Of a stretch of DNA of 64,000 bases, positions 33,721-62,609 are shown in pieces (position 1 is the stretch's first letter; the number at the start of each line of letters is the position of its first letter). A program made the position numbers and the translations under genes. Source of the stretch: Selaginella moellendorffii. Lineage: Eukaryota; Plantae; Lycopodiophyta. The stretch covers positions 1,713,882 to 1,777,881 of the forward strand of contig NW_003314281.1 in NCBI RefSeq assembly GCF_000143415.4. Reading direction: 5' to 3'. A model generated the notes under the pieces. The model did no database searches, had not been told where the DNA came from, and saw only the letters and a program-made list of their open reading frames with translations.

Positions 33721-34242
33721 TTCTCTACGGTTGTGAGCTGGTGCAAGTCCAGCAGTAGATTTTTTTTATGTTTTCGTTATCCTCATTTCGTTTTCTCATC
33801 AGAGAATCCACCGTAAACATCGAACTGAAAAGACGTGTAACTCCCGACTTGCAAAGAAGTGTAACGTTTGAAAAAAGAATCAAAAAGAAGAGAGAGAGAG
33901 AAGCGTCATCTACGTTGTCTTTCGATTCGATCACGAGTGATCCAAGGCTGCCATAAAACTTGTCTATCTTCTTCCTTGAGATGAGTAAGAAAGAAACAAA
34001 AAGTGAAGTTAGCAGAAAAAAAAAAGAACAAACGACTTCTTCACACACAAGCTACAAGAAAATGCAGGCATGATCACATCTCGAACAGACAAATCCACAA
34101 AACCTCTTCACTATCATCTGGTTGAGCTTTGATGTTCTCGCGAACCGCTTCCTCAAAACTGTAGCAAAAAGAACTTCGTTTCCTCTTTTTTACCTGAGTG
34201 CTGCGCGCGAAAGGATTTCCTCAAAGAAAATTTTTACTAAAA

Positions 34243-34545
34243 GGATATCGGGCCTCCTTGGGCGCCCTGGGTACCAAGCGCTATCCGGTAGATCACGGTG
34301 GGGTTGACCATACCGACTTAGCACTACTGGGTCACCGACGAGGGGGGCCAAGTGGTCAAGGGTCAGCGACCCCATTTACTAAGCAACCCGAGTAACCATA
34401 CCTGCCACTCCATTTCTTTTATACCGGTGTTCCTCTACTGCACCTTGGCTGGTGGGATAGGTTTTCAGCTTACATGGCACAATACCCGCATCTCCGGGAT
34501 GACTAGGATTGTTGGTTGTCAACCTGGCATTATCCTATGGTAAGA
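34243..34545 (+). repeat. GC-rich ~300-bp non-coding element abutting PPR 3' ends; copies at ~40509-40790 (-), ~46372-46694 (-) and a fragment at 37082-37110
   Basis: GATATCGGGCCTCCTTGGGCGCCCTGGGTACCAAGCGCTATCCGGTAG...GGTCAGCGACCCCATTTACTAA is nearly identical in three places. Confidence 0.85.
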
Positions 34546-34547
34546 GT

Positions 34548-36548
34548 TTAGTTCCAAGAGCTCGCAAGTAAAATATAAGTAGCACCATTGGATGAATCCT
34601 TACCCAGCAATTTTCCAGCCGACATTTCCACAACCTTTGCATTTCGATGGATTCTCGATGCTCCCAGAAGAATCATCCACAGGCCCGGCTGTGGAACAAA
34701 TGGCATGAATTCCACCACTTCCATGGCTCGCTCCAGCTGACCGGCTCGCCCCATTGCGTCAACCAAGCAGTAGTAATGCTCGATCCTGGGAGAGATCCCA
34801 AAGTCTGCGATCATGGACAAAAAACCTCGGCAACACTGCTCGAGCTGGCTCGCTGCCGCTGCTAGAATTGTCGTGAAGATGATCTCGTCTGGCTTGAAAG
34901 CCAGCATGATCATCTCTCGAAAGAGATCCAGTGCCTCGCTCACGCGTCCGTTCTGGACATAGGCCGCAATGATCGAGCTCCATGTCGTGACCTCCTGCTG
35001 CTTTTCAAACCGCTCAAATGCTGTTCTCGAGGATTGAACGTAGCCATGCTGTGCGAGCGCCAAGATCACGGTGATGAGAGCTACTTGGTTGCGATCTGGC
35101 ATTGTTTCGTAGATGTCCATGGCACTCGCAAGTTGGCCATCCTGTGCATAAGCTTGCATCATTACAGTGGATGTCACAGCGTTTATCTCTGGCATTTCGA
35201 CGAAGATCTTCACTGCTTCCTCGGATAATCGGCAGCTGACCAATGAGGACAAGAGAGTGTTGTAAGACACCAGGTTGTGGCCAGGCATTTGCTCAAAGAA
35301 ATCTTTGCAGTGGTGGACGTCGGGTGCGTAGCAAGCGAGCATGGTGTTCCAGGAGACCATGTCCAGGCACGGCAAAGAATCAAACACCGCTCGAGCTTTG
35401 TCGATCTTGGAGTGATTGGCGTATAAGACAATCATGTTGGTCCAGGCTGACAAGCAACTGGGATCGTCGAGTGTGGTTTCTCGCATGATCTGAAACAAAC
35501 TCTCGCCATCTTGTACATGCCCAAACCGTGCAAATGCTTGAAGCATCACGCTCCAGGTGATTGAGCTTCGCTCTGGCATAATCGCAAACAGTCGTTTCGC
35601 CTCGTTAAGGCTACATGCGTCCGCGTAAGTTTTCAGCATAGTTGTCCAGGAAATCACGCTTCTACAAGGCATCGAATCAAACAGTGCCTTTGCTCCTTCC
35701 AAATCTCCCATTCTGGAATAACCCTGCAAGACAGCATTCCAAGAAATCTCGTTGCGCTCCGGCATGGCAACCGAAAACACCGATTCCAGGGCCTCTTCCA
35801 GCCCCAACTGAAGAAACACAAGCAAGATGGAGTTCCACGAGACAACATTGCGAGCGGGCATTCCGTCAAAAAACTCTTTTGCCAAAGACAAATCCCCAGC
35901 CTGAGCAAATGCCGAGATTATAGCGTTCCAAGCAGCTAATGTTCTTGCGCCTACGCTCTGGAACACGGCCATAGCCTTGCCTGTGTTGCCACTGAGAGCA
36001 TAGGAAGAGATCATAGTGGTCCACGTGTACTCATCGTGAACGGGCATGATTTGAAAGAGCTCCTCGGCTTCACTATAATGCCCGGTCTGGGCATATGCGC
36101 AAATCATGGAGTTCCACGACACCACGTTCCTCACGGGCATACTCTCGAACATACACTGTGCGAGATCCACAAGGCCGTGCTCGGCGTAGGCATTCATCAT
36201 AGCCGTCCACGCTACCACGTCCTTGGACGGCATCCTGTCAAAGACCCAGCGAGCGTCGTCCAGATGCCCCCTGTGGGCATATGCCTGGAGGAGGATATTC
36301 CAGGAGAAGGAATTGGGATCTTTGATCCCGGCGAAGACGGAGAGGGCACGCTCGAGGCTGCCGCAGCGTGCGTACATCTGGACGAGGAGATTGGCGAGGT
36401 AGCGATCGTCGCGGCATTGCGCGCAGCTCTGGATCGAGGCGTGGAGCAGCGCGCCGCGATCGAGGGTCTTGACATTGGCAATCCTGCGAGCAAAATCTTC
36501 TACTTGCTGCTCGTTTGCGCGAGAAGGAAGAGAGGAGGAATGGATCAT
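34548..36548 (-). CDS. PLS-class PPR protein with E domain (organellar RNA-editing factor type), intact copy A
   Basis: Intronless 666-aa ORF of tandem short PPR motifs (VVSWNSMICAYAQTG) ending HYYCLVDAMGRAGQLERA...MPFVPQPGLWMILLGA...TYILLAS; no DYW. Confidence 0.92.
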   Translation of the reverse strand: MIHSSSLPSRANEQQVEDFARRIANVKTLDRGALLHASIQSCAQCRDDRYLANLLVQMYARCGSLERALSVFAGIKDPNSFSWNILLQAYAHRGHLDDARWVFDRMPSKDVVAWTAMMNAYAEHGLVDLAQCMFESMPVRNVVSWNSMICAYAQTGHYSEAEELFQIMPVHDEYTWTTMISSYALSGNTGKAMAVFQSVGARTLAAWNAIISAFAQAGDLSLAKEFFDGMPARNVVSWNSILLVFLQLGLEEALESVFSVAMPERNEISWNAVLQGYSRMGDLEGAKALFDSMPCRSVISWTTMLKTYADACSLNEAKRLFAIMPERSSITWSVMLQAFARFGHVQDGESLFQIMRETTLDDPSCLSAWTNMIVLYANHSKIDKARAVFDSLPCLDMVSWNTMLACYAPDVHHCKDFFEQMPGHNLVSYNTLLSSLVSCRLSEEAVKIFVEMPEINAVTSTVMMQAYAQDGQLASAMDIYETMPDRNQVALITVILALAQHGYVQSSRTAFERFEKQQEVTTWSSIIAAYVQNGRVSEALDLFREMIMLAFKPDEIIFTTILAAAASQLEQCCRGFLSMIADFGISPRIEHYYCLVDAMGRAGQLERAMEVVEFMPFVPQPGLWMILLGASRIHRNAKVVEMSAGKLLGKDSSNGATYILLASSWN

Positions 36549-36600
36549 CCATCCAAACTTGCCAATTCCCTCACATTTGAATTTAGGGCTCCTCTGTGCT

Positions 36601-37026
36601 ATGGTTTGGAGCTGTTCTTCCGTCCTCGGCCACGCGAATGTTGGCTCTGGGAAAAGACGCTAGAGCAGCAGCTGGAATTCTCATGTTTGCGTCCGGGGAT
36701 TGGTCTCCAGTGCTGAGATTAAGCTTCTCAGGAGCAGACTCAGACGAATTCGTCCAGAGAAGAAGCTCTTCGGTGGAGATGGAACATTTGCAAGAAACCA
36801 AGTTCGTCATTCCCCTGGAACAACAAAAGAGAAAAGATGATCTATCCAAAAAACATATACCTTGGATTGGATCAACGCTCTGGCCTGCTTGACGCCTTGG
36901 TGCTACGCAAATCGATGCCCCGGCACAGCACAGAGACGCGGTGCTTGTAAGCCTCGAACATTTCTTCCTCCTCTGCAGAGCTTCTCGGATCAAACAGAGT
37001 CGATCGATAAGCTTTTCGTTTTCCTG
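36601..37026 (+). pseudogene. Rearranged 5' fragments of the PhyH dioxygenase gene (copy A)
   Basis: MVWSCSSVLGHANVGSGKR matches the start of the 37616..38804 gene; internal deletions and an inverted exon piece. Confidence 0.8.
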
Positions 37027-38859: not shown

Positions 38860-40500
38860 ATGATCCATTCCTTTTCGCGCAAACGAGCAGCAAGTAGAAG
38901 AATTCCCTTGCAGGATTGCCAAAGTCAACACCCTCGATCGTGGCGCGCTGCTCCACGCCTCGATCCAGAGCTGCGCGCAATGCCGCGACGATCGCACCTC
39001 GCCAATCTCCTCGTTCAGATGTATGCGCGCTGTGGCAACCTCGAGCACGCTCTCTCCTTCTTCGCTGGGGTCTACGATCCCAATTCCTTCTCCTGGAATA
39101 TCCTCCTTTAGGCATATACCCAGAGAGGGCATCTGGACGACGCTCGCCGGGTCTTTCAGAAGATGCCGTCCAAGGACGTGGCAGTGTGGACGGTTATGAT
39201 GAATGCCTACGCTGAGAAGGGCGTTATGGATCTCGCGCAATGTATGTCCTAGAATAGGCCCCTGAGGAACGTGGTGTTGTGGAGCTTTATGATTTGTGCA
39301 TATGCCCAGACCGGGCATTACAGTAAAGCTATGGAGCTCTTTCAAATCATTCACGCTCACGACGAGTACACGTGGACATCTATGATCTCTCGCTACGCTT
39401 AGGCTACGGCTGTGTTCCAGAGCGTCGGTGCAAGAACGGCTAGCTGCCTAGAACGCTATAATTTCGGCATTTGCCCATGCTGGGGATTTCTCCATGGCGA
39501 AAGGTCCCTTTAACGCAATGCCCGCTCGCAATATTGTGTCTTGGAAGAAGCGTGATTTCCCAGACAACTTTGCTGAAAACTTACGCGGACGCATGTAACC
39601 TTAACGAGGCGAAGCGACTGTTTGCGATTATGCCAGAGCGAAGCTCAATTACTTGGAGCGTGATGCTTCAAGCATTTGCACGGTTTGGGCATGTACAAGA
39701 TGGCGAGAGTTTGTTTCAGATCATGCGAGAAACCACACTCGACGATCCCCGTTTCTCGTCAGCCTGGACCAACATGATTGTCTTACACACCGTTCACTGC
39801 CAGAGATAAACGCTGTGGCCTCCTGGAACACCGTGCTCGTTTGATACGCACCCGACGTCCACCACTGCAAAGATTTCTTTGAGAAAATGCCCGGCCACAA
39901 CCTGGTGTCTTACAACACTCTCTTGTCCTCACTGGTCAGCTGCCGATTATCCGAGGAAGCAGTGAAAATCTTCGTCGAAATGCCAGAGATAAACGCTGTG
40001 ACATCCACTGTGATGATGCAAGTTTATGCACAGGAAGGCCAGGGACAACTACGAGACAATGCCGGTGGCGCTCATCACCGTGATCTTGGCGCTCACACGG
40101 CCCAATCCCCGAGAACAACCTTTGGGCGATCTGAAAAGAAGCAGGAGGCCTGGAGCTCGATCATTGCGGCCTATGTCCCTAACGGACGCGTGAGCGAGGC
40201 ACTGGATCTCTTTCGAGAGATGATCTTGCTGGCTTTCAAGCCAGACGAGACCATCTTCACGACAATTCTAGCAGCAGCAGCGAGCCAGCTCGAGCAGTGT
40301 TGCTGAGATTTTTTGGCAGACTTTGGGCTCTCCCAAGATCGAGCATTACTACTGCTTGGTTGACGCTGGAGCGAGCTGGTCAGCTGGAGCAATCCATGCC
40401 ATTTGTTCCACAGCTGGGCTTGTGGACGATTCTTCTGGGTCGAAATGCAAAGGTTGTGGAAATGTCGGCTGGAAAATTGCTGGGTAAGGAGCCATCGGGA
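38860..40500 (+). pseudogene. PPR pseudogene, copy B (inverted relative to copy A)
   Basis: Collinear with 34548..36548 but with frameshifts, deletions and stops (e.g. NILL*AY at ~39109). Confidence 0.9.
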
Positions 40501-43862: not shown

Positions 43863-44440
43863 ATGCCAAACAAGAGCAACAAGGTGTACAAGAAGCTTTA
43901 TCTTCTCCAAAACTACCCACTGTTTTGGTCTTCATCCTCCCAACAAAGTGGCCTCCAGTTTGAAAGCATGGATGAGTTGAAGATGTACTTGAAACAATAG
44001 CACCTAACCTGTATGAAATGCAATCATGATGAGTGCAGCAACTTTTACTACTTTAACAATAATAACATCAGCTAGCCAAGGTATCACTGCAATCTGTGCA
44101 AGAAAAAATTCACTTATGGTGGAAAAACAAGACCAACCTACATGAAACGGCCAAGGTCAAGCAACACTTAGGAAGTCGATAGGGCACATGAGAACAAGAA
44201 GCTCAAGTGCACTCCAGTTGAATATGAGACAAGGAAGGGTTCACTAGTCGAAGCGAAGCAAAGTGGTCAACAGGCCAATAAAGTTGGGTGGTGATTCGGG
44301 TGGAGGACATGGAAGATTTTGACATGGATGACCTGGAGGTGGCTAGAATCATGGCGCTGGTCGAGGAGAATGAAGTCCCAAGCGAGGAGGAACACATCCC
44401 TCTTGTGTTCCCTGAGGTGGTGGAAATTGTAGTGAGTGAC
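43863..44440 (+). pseudogene. Divergent Dof-like zinc-finger gene, copy 1 (truncated)
   Basis: CMKCNHDECSNFYYFNNNNIS*PRYHCNLCKKKFTYGGKTR at ~44010-44133, followed by an acidic region. Confidence 0.7.
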
Positions 44441-44713
44441 GAATGCCGAACTTGGTTTCTTGCAAATGTTCCATCTCCACCAAAGAGCTTCTTCTCTGGA
44501 CGAATTCGTCTGAGTCTGCTCCTGAGAAGCTTAATCTCAGCACTGGAGACCAATCCCCGGATGCAAACATGCGAATTGCATTAATCGCAGCTGCTGCTCC
44601 AGCGTCTTTTCCCAGAGCCAACATTCGCGTGGCCGAGGAGGGAAGAACAGCTCCAAACCATAGCACACAGGAGCCCTAAATTCAAATGTGAGGGAATTGG
44701 CAAGTTTGGATGG

Positions 44714-46370
44714 ATGATCCATTCCTCCTCTCTTCCTTCTCGCGCAAACGAGCAGCAAGTAGAAGATTTTGCTCGCAGGATTGCCAATGTCAAGACCCTC
44801 GATCGCGGCGCGCTGCTCCACGCCTCGATCCAGAGCTGCGCGCAATGCCGCGACGATCGCTACCTCGCCAATCTCCTCGTCCAGATGTACGCACGCTGCG
44901 GCAGCCTCGAGCGTGCCCTCTCCGTCTTTGCCGGGATCAAAGATCCCAATTCCTTCTCCTGGAATATCCTCCTCCAGGCATATGCCCAGAGGGGGCATCT
45001 GGATGACGCTCGCCGGGTCTTTGACAGAATGCCGTCTAAGGACGTGGCAGCGTGGACGGCTATGGTGAATGCGTACGCTGAGAACGGCGTTATGGATCTC
45101 GCGCAATGTATGCCCTAGAATAGGCCTGTGAGGAACATGGTGTTGTGGAACTTTAGGATTTTTGCATATGCCCAGACTGGGCATTACAGTAAAGCTATGG
45201 AGCTCTTTCAAATTATGCACGCTCACGACGAGTACGTGGACAGCTATGATCCCTCGCTACGCTTAAGCTGTGGCTGTGTTCCAGAGCGTCGGTGCAAGAA
45301 CGTTAGCTGTCGGCATTTGCCCAGGCTGGGGATGTCTCCCTGGCGAAAGATCCCTTTAACGCAATGCCTGCTCGCAATATTGTGTCGTGGAAGAAGCGTG
45401 AGTACCTAGACAACTATGCTGAAAACTTACGCGGACGCATGTAACCTTAACGAGGCGAAGCGACTGTTTGCGATTATGCCAGAGCGAAGCTCAATTACCT
45501 GGAGCGTGATACTTCAAGCATTTGCACAGTTTGGGCATGTACAAGATGGCGAGAGTTTGTTTCAGATCATGCGAGAAACCACACTCGACGATCCCAGTTT
45601 CTCGTCAGCCTGGACCAACATGATTGTCTTATACGCCGTTCACTCCAAGACCGACAAAGCTCGAGCAGTGTTTGATGCTTTGGCGTGCCTGGACATGGCC
45701 TCCTGGAACACCGTGCCCGCTTGATACGCACCCGACGTCCATCACTGCAAAGATTTCTTTGAGCAAATGCCCGGCCACAACCTGGTGTCTTACAACACTC
45801 TCTTGTCCTCACTGGTCAGCTGCCGATTATCCGAGGAAGCAGTGAAAATCTTCGTCGAAATGCCAGAGATAAACGCTGTGACATCCACTGTGATGATGCA
45901 AGTTTATGCACAGGAAGGCCAAGGACAACTACGACACAATGCCGGTGGGGCTCATCACCGTGATCTTGGCGCTCGCACAGAGAACAACCTTTGGGCGATT
46001 TGAAAAGAAGCAGGAGGTCTGGAGCTCGATCATTGCGGCCTATGTCTTTAACGGACGCATGAGCGAGGCACTGGATCTCTTTCGAGAGATGATCTTGCTG
46101 GCTTTCAAGCCTGACGAGACCATCTTCACGACAATTCTAGCAGCAGCAGCGAGCCAGCTCGAGCAGTGTTGCTGAGATTTTTTGGCAGACTTTGGGATCT
46201 CTCCCAAGATCGAGCATTACTACTGCTTTGGTTGACGCTGGAGTGAGCTGGTCAGCTGGAGCAATCCATGCCATTTGTTCCACAGCTGGGCTTGTGGACG
46301 ATTCTTCTGGGTCGAAATGCAAAGGTTGTGGAAATGTCGGCTCGAAAATTGCTGGGTAAGGAGTCATCGG
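44714..46370 (+). pseudogene. PPR pseudogene, copy C, preceded by a PhyH 5' fragment (44440-44665, -)
   Basis: First ~90 codons are identical in translation to copy A, then a stop at 45118 and further lesions shared with copy B. Confidence 0.9.
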
Positions 46371-49300
46371 GATAATGCCAGCTTGACAGCCAACCATCCT
46401 AGTCATCCCCGGAGATGCGGGTGTTGTGCCATGTAAGCTGAAAACCTATCCCACCAGCCAAGGCGCAGTAGAGAAACACCAGTATAAAAGAAATGGAGTT
46501 GCAAGAATGGTTAATCCGGGAGAGCCTGAAAGGGCGCTTGCATCCCTCGGGTTGCTTAGTAAATGGGGTCGCTGACCCTTGACCACTTGGCCCCCCTCGT
46601 CGGTGACCCAGTAGTGCTAAGTCGGTATGGTCAACCCCACCGTGACCTACCGGATAGCGCTTGGTACCCAGGGCGCCCAAGGAGGCCCGATATCTTTTGC
46701 AAACATTTCTGTGATCTTCCTTTCTGGAATTTCTTGGTGCGCCAGGCCTTGAAAGTCATATGAGAGGAAACGAATGTTTGGATTCAGACGGTTCTCTATT
46801 TCGCGATCTCAACCTAATGCTGCAGAGGTCACGCTTGCGTTTTCTTGTAGCTTGTGTGTGTGAAGGAAAATTCTTTGTTTTTCTTTGTTCTTGAAGGCTT
46901 ATTCAGTGGAGCTTAGAAGATGGATGAGTTTTATATCATGTAACTCGTTCTGTAGATGACGCTTCGCTCTCTGTCTTTTTCCCAATGATGGAAGGTTGGC
47001 TCTTTCAGGGGCCTGAGAAAGGATAGACACTTGTGCTCCAAACATCTAGTGGATAGTAGCTTATGGATAAATAAACATAAACCGTTTTTTTTTCAAAAAA
47101 TAAAGGTGGCTAAAAAACTAAGATATCTTTTGTCATGAACATTTATTGTGGAGCATTTCTTTCCTTTTTCTTCTTATTTAGAGGGAAGAAAGTGGCAGCA
47201 GACAGTGTGGCACACGGTGTCATACTATTCTGTATTTTGAAAAAAACTCTCTCTTGCTACCCTTGCATGCATGCATGGTGAATCCATTTATTGGCCTACA
47301 CTAATTTTCATCCACTACAAATAGTATATTCCACTAAACCTTGGGCAGCCAAGATTCCAATTGTGAGTTTATATTATAGCTATACCCATCTATCATCATA
47401 TCCTTCATATACATAATTGATATAGTTGTTGTCCATTCAAAAAAATTGGGTCTAGGGTTGGGGTTTTGACAAAGATGGGGTGAACTACAATAGTTTTTAT
47501 TCTTGCCAAAACAGTAACTATGCTTTATCTTTCATTTGGCAATTCCAGATGGGAAACTTTAGATTTACAAAATATAAAACAATTACAGAAGTGTGAAAAT
47601 GATTACTTAGGGGATACCACATTATTCTAATAGTGAAAAATTCCTATCCTCTTTTCTAAAGACCTTTTTTGGAGAGCCTTCTATTCCTTTGACTTGTAAC
47701 AAATAAATTTCTTATTCAGGCAAAAGAGAAAAAGTATAATGCATACTTCATAGTGGATGAAGATTTGAATGTCCATAGGCAAGTTATTTCTTTTTTGTAG
47801 ATTTAAAGTTTGCCATTTGAAAATATTGAATTAACGGTTTTTACTCAGACTTTTAATAAAGCACAATTACAACTTCAGCAAGGATCAACTGTTATGGTGC
47901 TACAACAATTAAATACCACTTCAAATACCTCTATTGGACTACCCTCTTTCGCCACTTTGACTAGCAGTGCATTGAAAAGTATTCTAGCTAATCTAATTTT
48001 AAGAAGAATCTAAACTAGCAAATAAAACAGATTATTCACGAATCTTACCTTGCTCTTACAAAAAGCCCACATCTTGTTCTTTTATGATACCTTGTCACTA
48101 TTTATATGCATCTAAACTACCCGTAACAATAGAAGATTTCTCATGTTTATCACTCTTAGGAATATCTAGTAAAATTCCTTGTCACCATCCTTAACTCTAT
48201 TACCGGTACTTCCAACAATCTGCTACGTGAACTACATGTGTTCATAGAGATATATGGATTTTATGAATAGCATGCCATAATTTCACACACAGCTAGTACC
48301 TAAAGATCTCATATCAGACTCTTGTCTTTCACTGGAAACTTCAGTTTTTTCTTACTCTAAAGCTCAAATCAACTTGTTTGTAGATTAAGGACATAGTCAA
48401 GAACAATATTTTCTTCCAAATAACACCCTCAAAGCTTGAGACTTTGAGAGTATGTCCATGCAAGTTAAGGGACGTATCAGAGTAGAGCAATCCACTATCG
48501 CAATGGATTTTCTCAACTCTGGTTTAGAATCCCACAGCTCAACATCCAGACTATTTAGATCATTTGTAAGTTAGTGATCATACTTTAGCAACAATTATAC
48601 TTCTGTCAAAGTGAATGACTGACAACTCTTTTTGGTACTATGGTTATAGATGGAGAGTCCTGTGTCTCTAGCCATATCTAGTAAAATACAAGTAAACGTA
48701 TTACCTTCTCCATAGTTTTTCTTTCTCTATGAAGATTCAACATTCTCATTTTGGTTTCAGCTGGTGGTTTCCATAGCCCTCATCTGAAAAAAAGCTGAAT
48801 ACATGTAACAAGTGCCACATTTGAGGCCCTTTGATTAGAACTACATTGTGTTCACTCGTTTTTGCCTAAAGAACAAAGAGAAAAGAGGATGAGATAAAAC
48901 CATCACAAAGACAATACCATATTAAACAAAGCCATTGTTGTAAAGCAGAGGAAGGCACTTGTGTTGAACAACTTGGCCTACTTTTAAGTCCTTCTACCAG
49001 CCTACAAATCTTACGAGGTCTTCATTCTGAACTTTCCTCCTCTGTGATCGTGATCTTGAGATAAAAAGAATGCTGAGCATGTGCACTCCATCGCCAAAGT
49101 AATCCTGGATTCACAGAGATATAGTTTAACTCATGGAAAACTAATGGAACTCAAAAGAAAACTCATGGAACTCAAGAGCAAAAATGCTTATGCATCTCCA
49201 GCAGCGAGTTCTCTGTAAGTTTCAATCAAGTATCCCCTTATCTCCAAGTTGTCCATCCCTCGGTTTAATTGCCAATACAGCAGAGCAAGGTCTGTGTGAG

Positions 49301-49732: not shown

Positions 49733-50616
49733 ATGCCAAACAAGAGTAGCAAAGTGTACAAAGAGCTCCATCTTCTCCAGAACTACCCACTATTTTGGTC
49801 TTCATCCGTGGCCTCCAGTTTGGAAGCATGAATGAATTGAAGATGTACCTAAAACAGTAGCACCCAACCTATATGAAATGCAATCACAGTGAGTGAAGCA
49901 ACTTTGACTACTTCAACAATGATAACATTGGCCAGCCAAGGTATCGCTGCAATCTGTGCACGAAAAAATTCACTTATGGTGGAAAAACAAAACCAACCTA
50001 CATGAAGCAGCCAAGGTCAAGCAGCACTCAAGAAGTCGACATGGCACATGAGAACAAGAAACTCAAGTGCACTCCAGTTGAAGACGAGATGAGGAAGGGT
50101 TTGCTGGTGGACAAAAGTCAAGTGAAGCAGAGTGGTCAACAGGCCGATAAAGCTGGGGCGGTGATCCGGGCGGAGGACATGGAAGATTTTGACATGGATG
50201 ACCTGGAGGTGGCTAGAATCATGGCACTGGTCGAGGAGAATGATGTCCCAAGCAAGGAGGAACACATCCCTCTTGTGTTCCCTGAGGTGGCGGAAATTGA
50301 AGTGAGTGACAAAGAGATGACTGAAATTTTGTCATAAAATCTTGAGGACGTGGATGATGAGGAGATGCTAGATCTTGCGTTTGAGGAGGTTTTTGAGCAG
50401 CCAGAACATGAGGGCTTGGTGGAAATTCAAATTGGCAATGGGGAAACGAGCCAAATCCTCCAAAAGAATGTGGACAATGAAGATCTTGTGCTTGAGGGGG
50501 ATTCTCAGGAGGAGCAGGCAAAGGCAATGGAGGGGGACATTGATTTTGCTCTTGAGCTTGAACAAGATCTCGAGCCCGAAGAAGATAAGCGAAAAGAGGA
50601 ATCCATGATACTCTAG
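49733..50616 (+). pseudogene. Divergent Dof-like zinc-finger gene with long acidic C-terminus, copy 2
   Basis: YMKCNHSE*SNFDYFNNDNIGQPRYRCNLCTKKFTYGGKTK, then the D/E-rich ORFs 50002..50337 and 50350..50616 separated by a stop. Confidence 0.7.
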
Positions 50617-51049
50617 AAAATGGAATTGGAGAAAGCTAAATGTAGTGGTATTTTTAATTTCAAATCAAATCTGCAAGGTAATATTTTTTGTTGATTGAAT
50701 CAATAATTAAATCAATACAATCAGGATAGAAAAAAGAAAACAAATACTTCCATGTTTAATAACATTAGATCGAAATACCACTTTTTTGAATTAAAGATGA
50801 TGTTCACAACAAGAATTTTCCACTGTCCTGAAATCAGGAAGTAGTCTTATTGGCTTGGGCATGTATCAAAACCTTGCTTCCAGATCTAAGATGTGACTTT
50901 TTATTTGAAAGAAGTCCAATCTACTCATGCATACAATACTTTAATACTTTGTTTATGTTTCCGTTTTCACTGTGCTGGACAGCGGCAAGATTGGGTCCTT
51001 GGCCTTCTTTTCCGCAAGCCTCCAAACGCATTGGAGCCATGGTTACCAT

Positions 51050-51905
51050 TTTCTTTTGATGGTACGAACTGCAAGTGAAGTATCTGGAGGTAGCGTTTTA
51101 CTCCCGTGAGTCCCAAAATATCCACGGACACAAAGTACCGCCTCTAAATGCTCTGTCTAGCAAAGTAAAAACCAGTTGACGTTTTGACAAAACAAAACCA
51201 AGCATACCTTCTCAGAACACAACGCGACATATGGTAAAACCAGCATTGCCATTTTCCCTGTCGCCAGCACTCTTTTTAACATCAAAATTCTCCAACAAGA
51301 CTCGTTCCTGCACTGTCAAAAGTTTTACGGATTACCATAAAAGAAAACTAATCTCAAGCACCTTGTCGAAAGTAGGCACTAAAATCACAAACAGTTAGAT
51401 TACCTGCCATTGATACAGTCTTCTAACCCCTTTCCGAAAGTATCCTTCACATAATTCAGCCGGAAGCCAATTGGACAACTTCTCACCGGAGACTGAGGAC
51501 GACAGATCGTTCACGATTGCCTTTCCTTCGTCAATGGGAGCTGCAGCAGCTTCTTTGCCAACGTTGTCATGACTCGCAAAGTCGAAGGTAGCAGAGAGTT
51601 CAATAAACTCGGGCCGTCAACGACTTCACTTTCGAGCAGTCACCTTTCTTGCTCCCAAGGACGTGTATTGCCTCGTCCCAGAAGCTATCTCCTGGTGATA
51701 CATACTCGTCGAGTAGCCACTTCGGAGTGGGATCACCATTTCCAGCGCTTGCATGAGGAGTGCATGGTAGCTTCTTCGCACTGTGCTGAAAGGGCGGTAA
51801 TTGTCTGTCAGCCACTTTAACCATTTCAGCCACTCGTTCCACTTCGTTGCACTGAGAGAAATCGCCATCTCGTTTCTCAAAGCTTTGCTTTGAAGAGACG
51901 TCCAT
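51050..51905 (-). pseudogene. TEB: Fragment of DNA polymerase theta/TEBICHI (POLQ-HELQ helicase N-terminus)
   Basis: SPGDSFWDEAIHV, LSNWLPAELCEGYFRKGVRRLYQWQ|, LMLKRVLATGKMAMLVLPYVALCSEK|, EHLEAVL..VRGYFGTHGSKTLPPDTSLAV. Introns retained, frameshifts, an exon missing. Confidence 0.8.
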
Positions 51906-52169
51906 CTTCTCGGCAGAAATGGTTGAAGTGGCTGACAGACAATTACCACCCTTTCAGCACAGTGCGAAAAAGCTACCATGCACTCCACTGGAAATGGTGA
52001 TCCCACTCCGAAGTGGCTACTCGACGAGTATGTATCACCAGGAGATAGCTTCTGGGACGAGGCAATACACGTCCTTGGGAGCAAGAAAGGTGACTGCTCG
52101 GAAGTGAAGTCACTGACGGCCCGAGTTTATTGAACTCTCCGCTACCTTCGACTTTGCGAGTCATGACAA
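51564..52169. repeat. Near-perfect long inverted repeat (arms 51564-51827 and 51916-52169, ~88-nt loop)
   Basis: Arms are reverse complements with a few substitutions and one 10-nt indel; mirrored ORFs 51569..51820(+) and 51973..52164(-). Confidence 0.97.
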
Positions 52170-52241
52170 ATGAAGAAAACGAGAAGAAATCCTGGCGATC
52201 TGTCTCCAGTAAGTGACGATGATCTCTTTTCTTTCATTCCT

Positions 52242-52615
52242 CTAGAGATGTTTTGCAAGAGATTGCATGTCCTCTAAGAGATCCAAGGCCACCTGGCCTT
52301 CACCGTTTTCAGCGTAGCCCAGCACCAGCGCCGTCCAGGACACGACATCGTGCAGTGGCATCTTGTCAAAAACTCTGCGAGCGTCTGCCGAGCTCCCACA
52401 TTTGACGTAGAAATCCACCAGCGTGTTTGCAACGAAATACTCCAACTCGACACCACCTTTAGCAGCTTGCCAGACTTTCACTGCAGCAACGTAGCTCCGA
52501 GCGTTTGGCTGAGAACCCCGAGCTTTCATCTCCTGGAATAACTCTAGAGCTCTGGTTCACCATTGTCACCGTGTCCCACCATGACTGAATTCCAAGTACC
52601 CACGTCCCGCTGCTT
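52242..52615 (-). pseudogene. PPR gene fragment
   Basis: FVANTLVDFYVKCGSSADARRVFDKMPLHDVVSWTALVLGYAENGEGQVALDL; isolated and truncated. Confidence 0.82.
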
Positions 52616-52689
52616 TCTTTAATGTTCTCGGCACCGTGAAGCTGAAGCTGGATTCGTTGCCCATCAAGACATAAAGATCGAAACTAATA

Positions 52690-53420
52690 ACACCAATGCC
52701 TAGGAGAGGGTACACATCTCCAAGATGATCAAAGCCAAGATTGAGAACCAGGTAGATCTACACACTCGATGCAAGTAAGTAGACAACACCAAACTACATA
52801 AGAAAACCTTTGCTTTGACAATGTGCGTCGGTGCGTTTTTGAGGCAGTCAGCAGCGATTCCTCCATAAGCTCGAACGAGTCCTCCAGTTCCAAGCCTCGT
52901 TCCACCAAAGTACCTGGATTTCCAATTAGCTTTTGTTCTTTCGTTTGGAAAAACGATGATAGGTACCTCGTGACAATGATCATAACTCCATCCACACCAG
53001 AATTTTCTCTGGCAGCATAGATTGGCCGTCCTGCCGTTCCTCCAGGCTCTCCACCATCGCTAAAACGATAGCGTTCTTTGATCTAAGCTGGAAGAAAATG
53101 AAACATTCCAGCAAGGAAAAGAAGAAGGCGAAATAAAAGAACCACCTTGTAAGCTCAGCAATTGTGAGATGCGGATCCAAGACCTTGCAAAAAAAAGAAT
53201 GAGCTAAGATCGCGATTTTCTTCTTTCCAAAACTAGACCTCGGAGAGAAATGCCAATGCGCCTTGTTCATCGTCCACTGTCCAGAGCGGCCGTGGCGATG
53301 AACTTACTTCGTTTCATCTCGCACTGCGAAGAAACCCTGGACGAGATTGCTGTGTATGCCGATGCTGCGCCATCGCTCGAAGATTTCGCTCCTCCCTGGC
53401 GACTGAAATGCATATACATT
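52690..53420 (-). pseudogene. IMPACT/YigZ (UPF0029) family pseudogene
   Basis: Spliced minus-strand pieces [34 protein letters not shown]...GVMIIVTR|[18 protein letters not shown]; a TGA and frameshifts interrupt it. Confidence 0.85.
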
Positions 53421-54261
53421 GGCGCCAGCGCCGCCGTCCTTCCATCGATCTAGACGAGGAATCAAAGCACAAGCGCGAGTGCCTTTCGAAAATTGCGCTA
53501 CTATAGAATCTCAGACACGGGGTGGTCCTACGTGGCAGAACTCTAGTCAGGATCTTCTAGCGCAGCTAGGGCGACGAGGAGATCTGCAATCGATCGCGTT
53601 TCCCTGGAATGCCGCTGCTTCACTCGAGATATTCGCTGCTAGTCCGAGCCGTGCTTCGCCACTGCCGAGCGCAATGCCGGATTGCGCTGCGATGCTGTGA
53701 CGATTTCCACGCGAGGATCTTTGGACAGAGAAGTAGAATGAGATCTTTAGGTACTAGCTGTGTGTGAAATTCCATATATCTTCGTGCAGCAGATTGTTGC
53801 GAGTACCAGATTCCCTAGTATATTCAATTGAGCCCTATGTGGAGAAATCTTCTATTGTTATGGGCAGTTTAGGATGCATACAAATAATAACAAGGTATCA
53901 TAAAAGAACAAAATGTAAGCTTTTTGTAAGAGCTTTTTTGAAGAACAAGATGAGATTCATGAACACTGTTTTATTTGCTAGTTTAGATTCTTCTTAAAAT
54001 TAGATTAGCTAACCCTTCAATGTACTGCTAGTCAAAATGGTGGAGGGCAGCCCAAGAGAGGTACTTAATTGTTGTAAGAGTTGATCCTTCATGAAGCTAT
54101 AATTAGTCTGAGTAAATGCGCTTCCGGTGACTAGGATGGTTGGTTGTCGACGTGGCAGTATATGATAAGCTCGATGCTCCCAGAAGACAGGAACAAATGG
54201 CATGGATTGAGGTCCATGAGTTTGTTTCTTTGTGGGTTCCATGAGTTAAATTATATCTTCG

Positions 54262-59324: not shown

Positions 59325-59996
59325 CTCGATTGAGTAAGAGACAACTTCGTTTCAAGATTGAGTAAAACGCTCTTCCATGTTTTTTCTCAGGTGGACGTTG
59401 CAAGAAAGAAAGAAAAAAGGAAACATTGTAAGGGAACCTGTAGTCATCGGTAAAAGGAAAACAATTTTGACAGCCCGAGTTTTCAGTAGCCGGTCCCGAG
59501 GACGAGATAAGCATTTGATCCCTGTCCTCGACCACTATGTAGTAAATTAAGAAATCATTTACTTCTTCAAGTGGTAGTCACTAGTTACAAAAAACAACAA
59601 AAAAAAAAAAAGAATTCCAGGAACTGTAATGAATATATAGAGCTCTTTTATCGGGACAAGATCTCTCCAATATCATGAAGGCAAGATCTCTCCAATAGGA
59701 ACAAGACAACTTTGACTGCTTCATGAGTCTCTGGCTGGAGGTATGTGGAATGGAGAAAACAAACGAAATATCCAACGTGTGCCAAACAAGGAATGCGATT
59801 GATCGAGATGGACAACAACAACGTTGAAATTACAAGCTGTTTCGCAATCAATGTCTTATATTGGAGTCCCAAGTACATCCTCTCCACCCATGCTTTCACC
59901 AAATTAGTACTATTGATAAGATCGCCCACTTGGACATCCTATTGGAAATATCACCCACTTGGACAATACAAGTTCCAACCTGAGGAACATGAGAAC

Positions 59997-62609
59997 ATGG
60001 ACGAGGAGATTGAGCTCGTCCGGCTCATCGATTCATGCAAGTCACTCTCCACGGCCCAATCCCTCCACTCGCGGATCAAACACACCAAAAACACGTTTCT
60101 TCTCAACAAGATCATCCAAATGTACGCAAAGTGTGGGAGTGTCACTCATGCTCGCAGGGTTTTCGAAAGCATCGCCACCAAAAACACTATGTCATGGGAT
60201 TTCATGCTTGCGGCCTACGCTGGGAATGCCCAGATCGAGGATGCAGCAGACTTCTTCTCCAAGATGCCCAGGAAAAGCGTCGTTTCGTGCACAGCAATGA
60301 TCGTTGCGTTCTCCCAGAGTGGCCACCTTCGTGACGCAAAGAACACATTCGATGAGATGCCCGAGAGAGATGCTATTTGCTGGAATGCGATGCTCTCTGC
60401 ATATGCCCGAAGTGGGCATCTGCAACGAACACAGGCTCTGTTTGAAAAGATGCCTGAGAGGAATGTTGCGGCTTGGAACGTTCTTCTTTCGGCTTATGGC
60501 CAAAACTCGAGCACTGAGATCGCGAAAAGGGTGTTTTATGATATGCCACAACTGAATGTCTCGTCTTGGAACACACTGCTTTGCACATATGCCCACAAAG
60601 GGCATATCGTCGAGGCGAAAGACATATTTGATTCAATGCCGGAGAGGGATCTCATCTCTTGGAAGGCTCTTTTATCCGGATATTCGCAAAACGGGCTCGT
60701 GGAAGAAGCAAAGAAAACTTTAGAGAAAATGCCAGTGAAAGATATCGTGGCATCAAATGCAATGCTCTCGGCGTATACCCAAGGAGGGCACCTGGAACAA
60801 GCGAAAGAAATGTTCGACCAAATGGACGAACAAAACATTGTGTCGTGGACGACAATTGTAACTGCTTACGCACAGAGTGGGAATCTCCGGGATGCCAAGC
60901 ACATTTTTGACAAAATGCCGCAGCGGGACATCGTATCCTGGAACTCTATGATAGCGGCTTATGCCCAAAACGGGCATCTTCACGAAGCTTTGGAGCTTTT
61001 TGACGAGATGCCGCAGGCAAACTTAACGTCCTGGAACACAATACTTTCGGTCTTATCTTTGCAGGAGAAAATATTCCGCGTTAAAGAAGTTTTCGATTCG
61101 ATGCCAAAGCACGACGTTGTCTCCTGGAACACACTTTTAACAGCGTATGCCCACAATGGGCAGCTTGAAAAAGCGAAGGAGACCTTCGATTTAATCCCCC
61201 ACAAGAACCTTGTGTCTTGGAAAGCCATGCTTTCGGCTTTCTACCAGCACAAGAATTTGGATCAAGCAAAAGCGCTGTTTGATCTCATGCCAGACCGTGA
61301 TCTAGTGTCTTACAATGCGATGCTTGCTGCTTATGCCCAGAGCGGGCATATTCACGAAGCAAAGCAAGTTTTCGACGCAATGTCGCAGAGGAATCTCATC
61401 TCCTGGACTGCCATGCTTGCTGCATACTCTCAAAACAATCTCCTCGACAAGGCAAAGCTCATCTTTGACGAGATGCCGGATCGGAATCTCGTCTCTTGGA
61501 CGGTGATGCTCTCGGCATATGCTCAAAACGGCAAGCTCGAGGAAGCAAAGCTCATTTTTGACCAGATTCCACGTCAAGATTCCGTCTCACGCACCGCCAT
61601 GATTGCGGCCTATGCCCAAAACGGGCATTGGGACGAGGCCAAGGCTATGTTCTTGAGCAGCAAAGAAGATGGTCGCGAAGAACACGATGTGAACGAAATC
61701 TCTTGCTCGGCATTGCTCGCTGCTTACACGAGACACGGCTGCCCGGATCGAGCAATAGATATCGATCCAACTCCAAGTGATCCAATCTCTCAAACAGCGA
61801 TCCTCTCGGCCTACGCGAGAACCGGCTTGATCGACAAGGCTCGAGAGATCTTCCTCGAAGCGCCCAAAGAGAACCTCATCGTCTGGAACGCGATGCTCTC
61901 GGCCTATGCCCAGAGTGGATCCCTGGACGAAGCCCAGCACCTCTTCCACCAAATGCCGCAGAGAAATCTCATCTCCTGGACGACGATGCTGGTGGGCTTC
62001 GCCCAGATCGGCCATCGGATGGATCGAGTGAGGCGATTCTTCGATTCCATGCCCGAGAAGGACTCCATCGCGTGGAGCGCGACGCTCGCGGCCTATGCCC
62101 ACAAGGGACATCCCATCCACGCCGCGAACCTCTTCGCGGAGATCAAAGTCATGGATTCCACCGAGCAGAGCTGCTTCGCGTCGGCGATCCACGCTTGCGG
62201 CCACGAGGGCGACGTGAATCGCGGCAGGCAATGCTTCGTGTCCATGGCCATGGATTTTGGAATCGAGGCGAGGAAGCAGCACTACACCTGCCTGATCGAT
62301 CTCCTGGGGCGAGCTGGGTACCTGATCGCGGCGGCGGAGCTCATCGATAGCATGCCATTCGTGCCGGATTCGCTCGAGTGGACGTCGCTGCTGGGATCCG
62401 CAGCGAGCTATCGCAGCGCCCAGCACGGGATCAAGGCTGCCAAGCACATCCTCCGCTCGGATCCCAAGAACACCGCCGCGTACGTGTTGCTGGGGAACCT
62501 CTCCGCGAGGCAGCGATTGGAATCAATCGCGCGGATCGACCAGGAACGTCACCTGGAAGAGAGATACTCGAAACATTCCAGACTCGCCAATAGGAGTTTG
62601 CCACGTTGA
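59997..62609 (+). CDS. Long PLS-class PPR protein with E domain, many tandem short motifs
   Basis: More than 20 tandem ~31-aa repeats (DIVSWNSMIAAYAQNGHLHEA), ending HYTCLIDLLGRAGYL...MPFVPDSLEWTSLLG...AAYVLLGNL. Likely start MDEEIELVRL at 59997. Confidence 0.92.
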   Translation: MDEEIELVRLIDSCKSLSTAQSLHSRIKHTKNTFLLNKIIQMYAKCGSVTHARRVFESIATKNTMSWDFMLAAYAGNAQIEDAADFFSKMPRKSVVSCTAMIVAFSQSGHLRDAKNTFDEMPERDAICWNAMLSAYARSGHLQRTQALFEKMPERNVAAWNVLLSAYGQNSSTEIAKRVFYDMPQLNVSSWNTLLCTYAHKGHIVEAKDIFDSMPERDLISWKALLSGYSQNGLVEEAKKTLEKMPVKDIVASNAMLSAYTQGGHLEQAKEMFDQMDEQNIVSWTTIVTAYAQSGNLRDAKHIFDKMPQRDIVSWNSMIAAYAQNGHLHEALELFDEMPQANLTSWNTILSVLSLQEKIFRVKEVFDSMPKHDVVSWNTLLTAYAHNGQLEKAKETFDLIPHKNLVSWKAMLSAFYQHKNLDQAKALFDLMPDRDLVSYNAMLAAYAQSGHIHEAKQVFDAMSQRNLISWTAMLAAYSQNNLLDKAKLIFDEMPDRNLVSWTVMLSAYAQNGKLEEAKLIFDQIPRQDSVSRTAMIAAYAQNGHWDEAKAMFLSSKEDGREEHDVNEISCSALLAAYTRHGCPDRAIDIDPTPSDPISQTAILSAYARTGLIDKAREIFLEAPKENLIVWNAMLSAYAQSGSLDEAQHLFHQMPQRNLISWTTMLVGFAQIGHRMDRVRRFFDSMPEKDSIAWSATLAAYAHKGHPIHAANLFAEIKVMDSTEQSCFASAIHACGHEGDVNRGRQCFVSMAMDFGIEARKQHYTCLIDLLGRAGYLIAAAELIDSMPFVPDSLEWTSLLGSAASYRSAQHGIKAAKHILRSDPKNTAAYVLLGNLSARQRLESIARIDQERHLEERYSKHSRLANRSLPR

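Follow-up and report, generated by a model that had tools for sequence, protein, structure and literature searches.

A hairpin-forming inverted repeat in the genome of Selaginella moellendorffii, built from coding sequence of a TEBICHI/POLQ-like (TEB-like) gene, is probably a neutral scar of an inverted duplication within a mosaic of gene scraps, and to judge from its context the locus appears to be inert. The repeat lies in the window, by which we mean the whole stretch of DNA that was analysed: 64,000 nucleotides (nt) of RefSeq assembly GCF_000143415.4, contig NW_003314281.1, positions 1,713,882 to 1,777,881 of the forward strand. We favor this interpretation because the hairpin sits inside a broken gene copy whose only strong relatives are truncated proteins and because its surroundings are themselves a mosaic of scraps, and also because the open reading frames (ORFs) of the window copy are absent from the protein collection searched, whereas its paralogues have RefSeq models. 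Against it speaks the position of the hairpin on the same strand as a gene-like unit whose paralogues have such models. The coordinates of the hairpin and of the gene remnants beside it are given in Table 1.

Table 1 Features of the hairpin locus and adjoining gene remnants, in positions of the window.
Feature	Positions	Strand	Details
Rest of truncated TEB-like pseudogene	51039-51561	-	LSNWLPAELCEGYFRKGVRRLYQWQ helicase start, degenerate Walker-A exon, ILMLKRVLATGKMAMLVLPYVALCSEK, TEHLEAVL..TLPPDTSLAV
Left arm (L)	51562-51831	-	270 nt; resident copy, sense on minus strand
Loop	51832-51911	-	80 nt between arms
Right arm (R)	51912-52171	+	260 nt; inverted partial copy of L, sense on plus strand
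PPR gene scrap	52245-52556	-	~2.5 repeats, no start; PF13041 E = 2.9e-16

The hairpin structure is real and strongly non-random. A repeat search returned two abutting inverted pairs, one of 182 nt at 98% (51564-51745/51988-52169) and one of 75 nt at 95% (51757-51831/51912-51986), and aligning L to the reverse complement of R joined both into a single arm pair. In this pairwise alignment the arms are ~96.5% complementary, differing by nine substitutions and one 10-nt deletion; the resulting gap lies in R, after 51985, and leaves L 51748-51757 unpaired. The predicted RNA fold of 51550-52185 (636 nt) has a free energy of -540.6 kcal/mol, compared with -196 +/- 6 for dinucleotide shuffles (z = -56.5), and the entire foldback (51562-52171) spans 610 nt. 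With arms of 260/270 nt around so short a loop, the repeat has the long, near-perfect intramolecular form that characterizes hairpin siRNA loci. An initial reading of the letters alone (hereafter the sequence-only reading) had placed near-perfect arms of ~260 bp at 51564-52169, and repeat search, alignment and fold all agree with it; its coordinates and arm length were essentially right, and its loop of ~88 nt is to be replaced by one of 80 nt. A possible extension of R past 52171 into the diverged next part of the exon was also considered and rejected, the local alignment score of 21 being not significant against 16.5 +/- 2.4 for shuffles (maximum 26).

Translation of L on the minus strand and of R on the plus strand gives the same peptide, ...DPTPKWLLDEYVSPGDSFWDEAIHVLGSKKGD..., which in L is held by a 101-codon minus-strand ORF (51905-51603), with a premature stop at 51600-51602. 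L represents part of the first coding exon of a TEB-like pseudogene (..AEMVKVADRQLPPF..SPGDSFWDEAI..FDFASHD) and shows 85% identity to S. moellendorffii protein P0007 over residues 30-102. The loop matches the paralogous gene models at their N-terminal coding start (..RRWTSLQSKALRNEMAI..), residues 8-29 of paralogue P0006 aligning to 51910-51845; it also has an insertion of ~11 nt beside the arm, and the 101-aa ORF begins within it, with its ATG at 51905. Past L, the minus strand continues with ..LSNWLPAELCEGYFRKGVRRLYQWQ followed by GT, then with ..ILMLKRVLATGKMAMLVLPYVALCSEK, and then with TEHLEAVL..TLPPDTSLAV... When these exons were searched one by one, as separate pieces, against PDB sequences, the second minus-strand piece matched residues 54-97 of human POLQ (weak, E about 1, not top-ranked) and the third matched residues 126-154 (top-ranked but weak, E about 0.05), the two matches being collinear with the human protein. 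Among plants, P0006 aligns with a Taraxacum TEB-like fragment (40% over 212 residues), including VSPGDAFWKEAL and the whole helicase start, and the counterparts of SPGDSFWDEAI are VSPGDAFWKEAL in Taraxacum P0010 and ISPGDSFWNEAI in P0009, a Euphorbia fragment. The conserved N-terminal motif and the helicase start are collinear with known TEB/POLQ. Because of these paralogue, angiosperm TEB-fragment and human POLQ matches, the arm is, on sequence similarity, genuine TEBICHI/POLQ N-terminal coding sequence. That the arm encodes SPGDSFWDEAI and runs on the minus strand into a TEB/POLQ helicase start had been proposed in the sequence-only reading, and translations, plant fragments and human POLQ now bear it out.

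The gene copy to which L belongs is short and broken. TEB similarity stops at about 51040, TEB-like sequence within the 64-kb window is confined to 51039-52189 (tblastn with Selaginella and angiosperm fragments as queries), and no later helicase or polymerase exons were found in minus-strand stop-free segments of at least 40 aa between 20000 and 52300. In the Walker-A exon, the earlier part of which is degenerate, SAGTS replaces SAGKS and is followed by a frameshift and a stop, and in comparison with P0006 the copy has at least four extra, copy-specific frame changes plus stops in this exon. The window copy thus described contains neither an intact superfamily-2 helicase domain with Walker A (GKS/T) nor a C-terminal family-A polymerase domain in the same gene. 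Exact look-up in a collection of 15 billion proteins found none of five window ORFs, and no ORF of the TEB-like copy is present there; for the 101-aa ORF, a word search limited in range to short proteins gave no relatives. The locus probably has no coding function, and its frame changes, SAGTS, stops and truncation confirm the initial view of the TEB/POLQ copy as a pseudogene.

The relatives of this copy are also truncated. When 1.84 billion representatives were searched exhaustively with phmmer, the 101-aa ORF being the query, one real relative emerged, P0001 (XP_024540932, "DNA polymerase theta-like isoform X1", S. moellendorffii; 283 aa, 89% identity, E = 8e-33), and no full-length protein bearing the N-terminal exon appeared. 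The P0001 cluster comprises six proteins (P0001 and P0004-P0008) of 168-298 aa from three S. moellendorffii loci (LOC112349916, LOC112351386 and LOC112351392), with several RefSeq isoforms modelled, and these paralogues are 85-92% identical in protein to the window copy. Dead sequence evolving neutrally would presumably have lost so high a similarity over the deep divergences within Selaginella, in keeping with an S. moellendorffii origin of the window. The cluster members that are long enough leave the TEB frame at one common place, after ..TEHLEAVLE, and share an out-of-frame tail (..EHVVSVDILGLTGVKRYLQILHLQF..), the TEB-homologous frame being the other one (..VRGYFG..TLPPDTSLAV.., cf. P0012). 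Since one out-of-frame tail is common to all, a single 5' fragment, truncated and frameshifted, is the ancestor of the family. By its similarity to these proteins, the window copy is a fourth member of this truncated polymerase theta-like family, one that lacks annotation and has decayed furthest, and it is neither a live TEB gene nor a simple TEB pseudogene. The multi-isoform RefSeq models suggest that the paralogues are transcribed, and these truncated loci may merit attention in their own right. Their stubs (168-298 aa) may be expressed or may merely be misannotated pseudogenes; they retain the N-terminal motif and an intact Walker A, and such products might be dominant-negative helicase stubs.

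The differences between the arms, polarized with the paralogue proteins as outgroup, reveal the order of events. Both arms carry two frameshifting deletions, between P0006 residues 102/107 and 117/121, which the paralogues lack, and in R the P0006 residues 30-60, 63-102 and 107-131 fall in three different frames; K for N and H for R are further copy-specific states common to both arms. Derived changes in L alone are E>K, E>K and P>L, and the 10-nt deletion is derived in R alone. Deletions in both arms together with changes private to each arm therefore indicate that the inversion took place in an already dead copy, the arms drifting independently since. Moreover, as the copied piece was already frameshifted, the rearrangement took place within junk, and no live gene was duplicated. 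The background cited in the sequence-only reading, that inverted gene duplications give rise to loci targeting the parent gene, is thus not supported here, the source being part of a dead, truncated paralogue family and already frameshifted when copied. The same independent derived changes argue against an artefact of assembly or cloning, for instance a palindromic chimera among the reads. Palindromes with short spacers are a known artefact class, but here the arms differ at nine sites and by a 10-nt indel, each arm shows private derived changes when set against the paralogues, and the repeat is internal to the 64-kb window rather than at a contig end; we consider such an origin exceedingly improbable.

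Eight of the nine arm substitutions are transitions, and four fall at CpG in one arm. Transitions at CpG are the pattern expected from deamination of methylated cytosine; with n = 9 the substitution pattern is not distinguishable from the ordinary plant mutation spectrum, and the CpG observed/expected ratio in the arms (0.77-0.85) is not depleted. At the rates usually assumed for plants, an arm divergence of ~3.5% would put the age at a few million years, by our own estimate and with the proviso that the Selaginella rate may differ, and the hairpin may accordingly be called fairly young, much as it had been described at first. The TEB hairpin is of interest mainly as a clean, datable example in which the inversion came after the death of the copy, the reverse of the order in the classic model, where a live gene gives rise to a hairpin that targets its own parent.

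The region around the hairpin is heavily rearranged, a description from the sequence-only reading that is upheld by a 5.9-kb tandem repeat, by inverted PPR copies and by the PPR scrap. The units of the tandem repeat occupy 38.0-44.3 and 43.9-50.3 kb, and each includes a decayed PPR copy that is inverted relative to the PPR gene at 34551-36659. At 53.7-54.75 kb there are older fragments of the unit, also in inverted orientation. The PPR scrap (~300 nt) adjoins R, directly upstream on the minus strand. The PPR ORF itself (34240-36679, minus strand, 666-703 codons) is long and open, and its inverted, decayed copies at 38996-40315 and 44583-46698, one per 5.9-kb unit, lie 2.6-12 kb from it with 86-99% complementarity. 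These PPR inverted repeats are of kilobase scale and face a possibly live gene, and they are far larger than the TEB hairpin. A protein search with PPR sequence from the window gave hits at 32% identity only. Part of the 5.9-kb unit is also an acidic, D/E-rich ORF without a Pfam family (50002-50616, plus strand), which has copies near 44200-44600 and extends up to the TEB scrap. Elsewhere in the window, a tandem array of ~7 copies of 84-bp units (60-82% identity to the reference) occupies 1377-1966, and a 938-codon ORF lies at 59793-62606 on the plus strand, its exact sequence being absent from the 15-billion-protein collection.

It could be speculated that a gene-capturing transposon, Pack-MULE- or Helitron-like, spread the TEB fragments as cargo and that the inverted repeat is part of the element. 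At least four dispersed copies of one truncated fragment would be in line with this, as would the adjacent scraps of unrelated origin (TEB, PPR and the acidic ORF). However, a search of 50300-53800 around the TEB scrap found no further inverted or direct repeats of at least 16 nt, and thus no transposon termini of that size, although termini that are shorter, more diverged or farther out would have escaped it; the arms, moreover, consist of coding-exon sequence that is continuous with the rest of the fragment. Transposon cargo is an improbable account of the repeat.

In plants, long near-perfect inverted repeats usually give siRNAs once transcribed. Such repeats can yield siRNAs without a trigger (10.1101/213314), and orthologues of DCL1, DCL3 and DCL4 are reported from all land plants including lycophytes, S. 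moellendorffii having no annotated DCL2 and no 24-nt peak (PMC5569507). Given this set of enzymes and the missing 24-nt peak, a transcribed hairpin would therefore plausibly give ~21-nt siRNAs, and at 96.5% identity the arms remain amply matched for processing by Dicer. An RNA that crosses both arms, read from either strand, would then fold and be cut by DCL4, DCL3 or DCL1 into heterogeneous siRNAs, which could act in trans on transcripts of the truncated TEB-like paralogues and, if similar enough, on functional TEB mRNA. This alternative draws on the 260-bp near-perfect duplex and on the protein identity of 85-92% that the paralogues show to this copy over the arm, which makes stretches of high nucleotide identity likely, as well as on the lycophyte Dicer-like enzymes and the trigger-free route. 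Yet the copy is unannotated and absent from the 15-billion-protein collection, which is weak negative evidence on a transcript, and the search of 1.84 billion representatives recovered no full-length TEB with the arm exon, so that functional TEB mRNA is a putative target. On balance, we regard a hairpin-siRNA locus acting in trans as doubtful. The nearest documented targets of arm-derived RNAs would putatively be the truncated paralogues, judging by similarity, and it is distinctly improbable that the hairpin is diced to 21-nt siRNAs repressing truncated TEB-like transcripts, functional TEBICHI mRNA, or both.

The sequence-only reading had offered a candidate proto-MIRNA or siRNA locus. Strictly taken, a proto-MIRNA would be a hairpin en route to a DCL1-processed precursor that releases one defined miRNA/miRNA* duplex against TEB. 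In the model of Allen et al. 2004, young plant MIRNA genes originate by inverted duplication, and the hairpin fits this mode of birth in that the homology of its arms reaches beyond any single 21-mer (reviewed in 10.1101/213314; PMC3237417). However, under the plant MIRNA criteria of 2018 foldbacks longer than 300 nt are not annotated as MIRNA (10.1101/213314), and at 610 nt the foldback exceeds this ceiling, so that at most the locus could be one for hairpin siRNAs. Furthermore, its near-perfect stem is without the bulge pattern that would guide precise DCL1 cuts, and Rfam 15 gave no match to a described miRNA family, neither at gathering score across the window nor at E <= 1 over 51300-52400. 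The proto-MIRNA proposal is thus not sustained, and we rate it as very improbable.

The neutral scar would have arisen in a few steps. A 5' fragment of TEBICHI/POLQ, comprising the N-terminal exon and the first helicase exons, appears to have been duplicated several times in Selaginella and is probably dead in all known copies. The window copy would first have acquired the two frameshifting deletions, after which ~270 nt of the first coding exon would have been copied in reverse to a site 80 nt upstream, likely through a strand or template switch or fold-back repair. Since then the arms would have drifted apart independently, to the nine substitutions and the 10-nt deletion now seen. Any read-through transcript might form a 260-bp duplex open to Dicer-like cutting, in which case siRNAs would be a by-product rather than a demonstrated TEB regulator. 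As a scar, the TEB hairpin is of little consequence, being another inverted duplication of a gene scrap. If siRNAs were to act on TEB or the TEB-like stubs, it would represent the early-stage birth of a hairpin-siRNA locus in a lycophyte, touching a DNA-repair polymerase, and microhomology-mediated end joining would come under small-RNA control.

Compared with known systems, the remnant resembles a TEBICHI/POLQ gene in its N-terminal SPGDSFW-EAI motif, its WLP..LY.WQ helicase start and its LMLKRV..GK.A.LVLPYV..C.EK block, all three in the same order as in human POLQ and in the TEB fragments of angiosperms. Unlike such a gene, the window copy covers ~250 codons only, with frameshifts and stops and with the Walker-A lysine gone, and the remaining helicase and the whole polymerase domain are missing. 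With the inverted-duplication model of MIRNA birth the hairpin shares a recent, lineage-specific duplication and arms whose entire length shows homology to a protein-coding gene. It differs in that its 610 nt and near-perfect 260-bp stem are too long for a MIRNA and in that its source was a dead, truncated paralogue and not a live gene. A parallel in form is offered by Arabidopsis IR71 and IR2039, which we take to be long endogenous inverted-repeat (hairpin) siRNA loci of angiosperms. Like these, the TEB hairpin combines a long near-perfect duplex with a short loop and would be open to cutting by several Dicer-like enzymes. IR71 and IR2039 are, however, defined by abundant siRNAs, whereas the TEB hairpin is known from its sequence, and its arms are much shorter (0.26 kb versus kilobase scale). 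In contrast to the hosts of the angiosperm loci, S. moellendorffii would process such a duplex with no annotated DCL2 and no 24-nt peak (PMC5569507).
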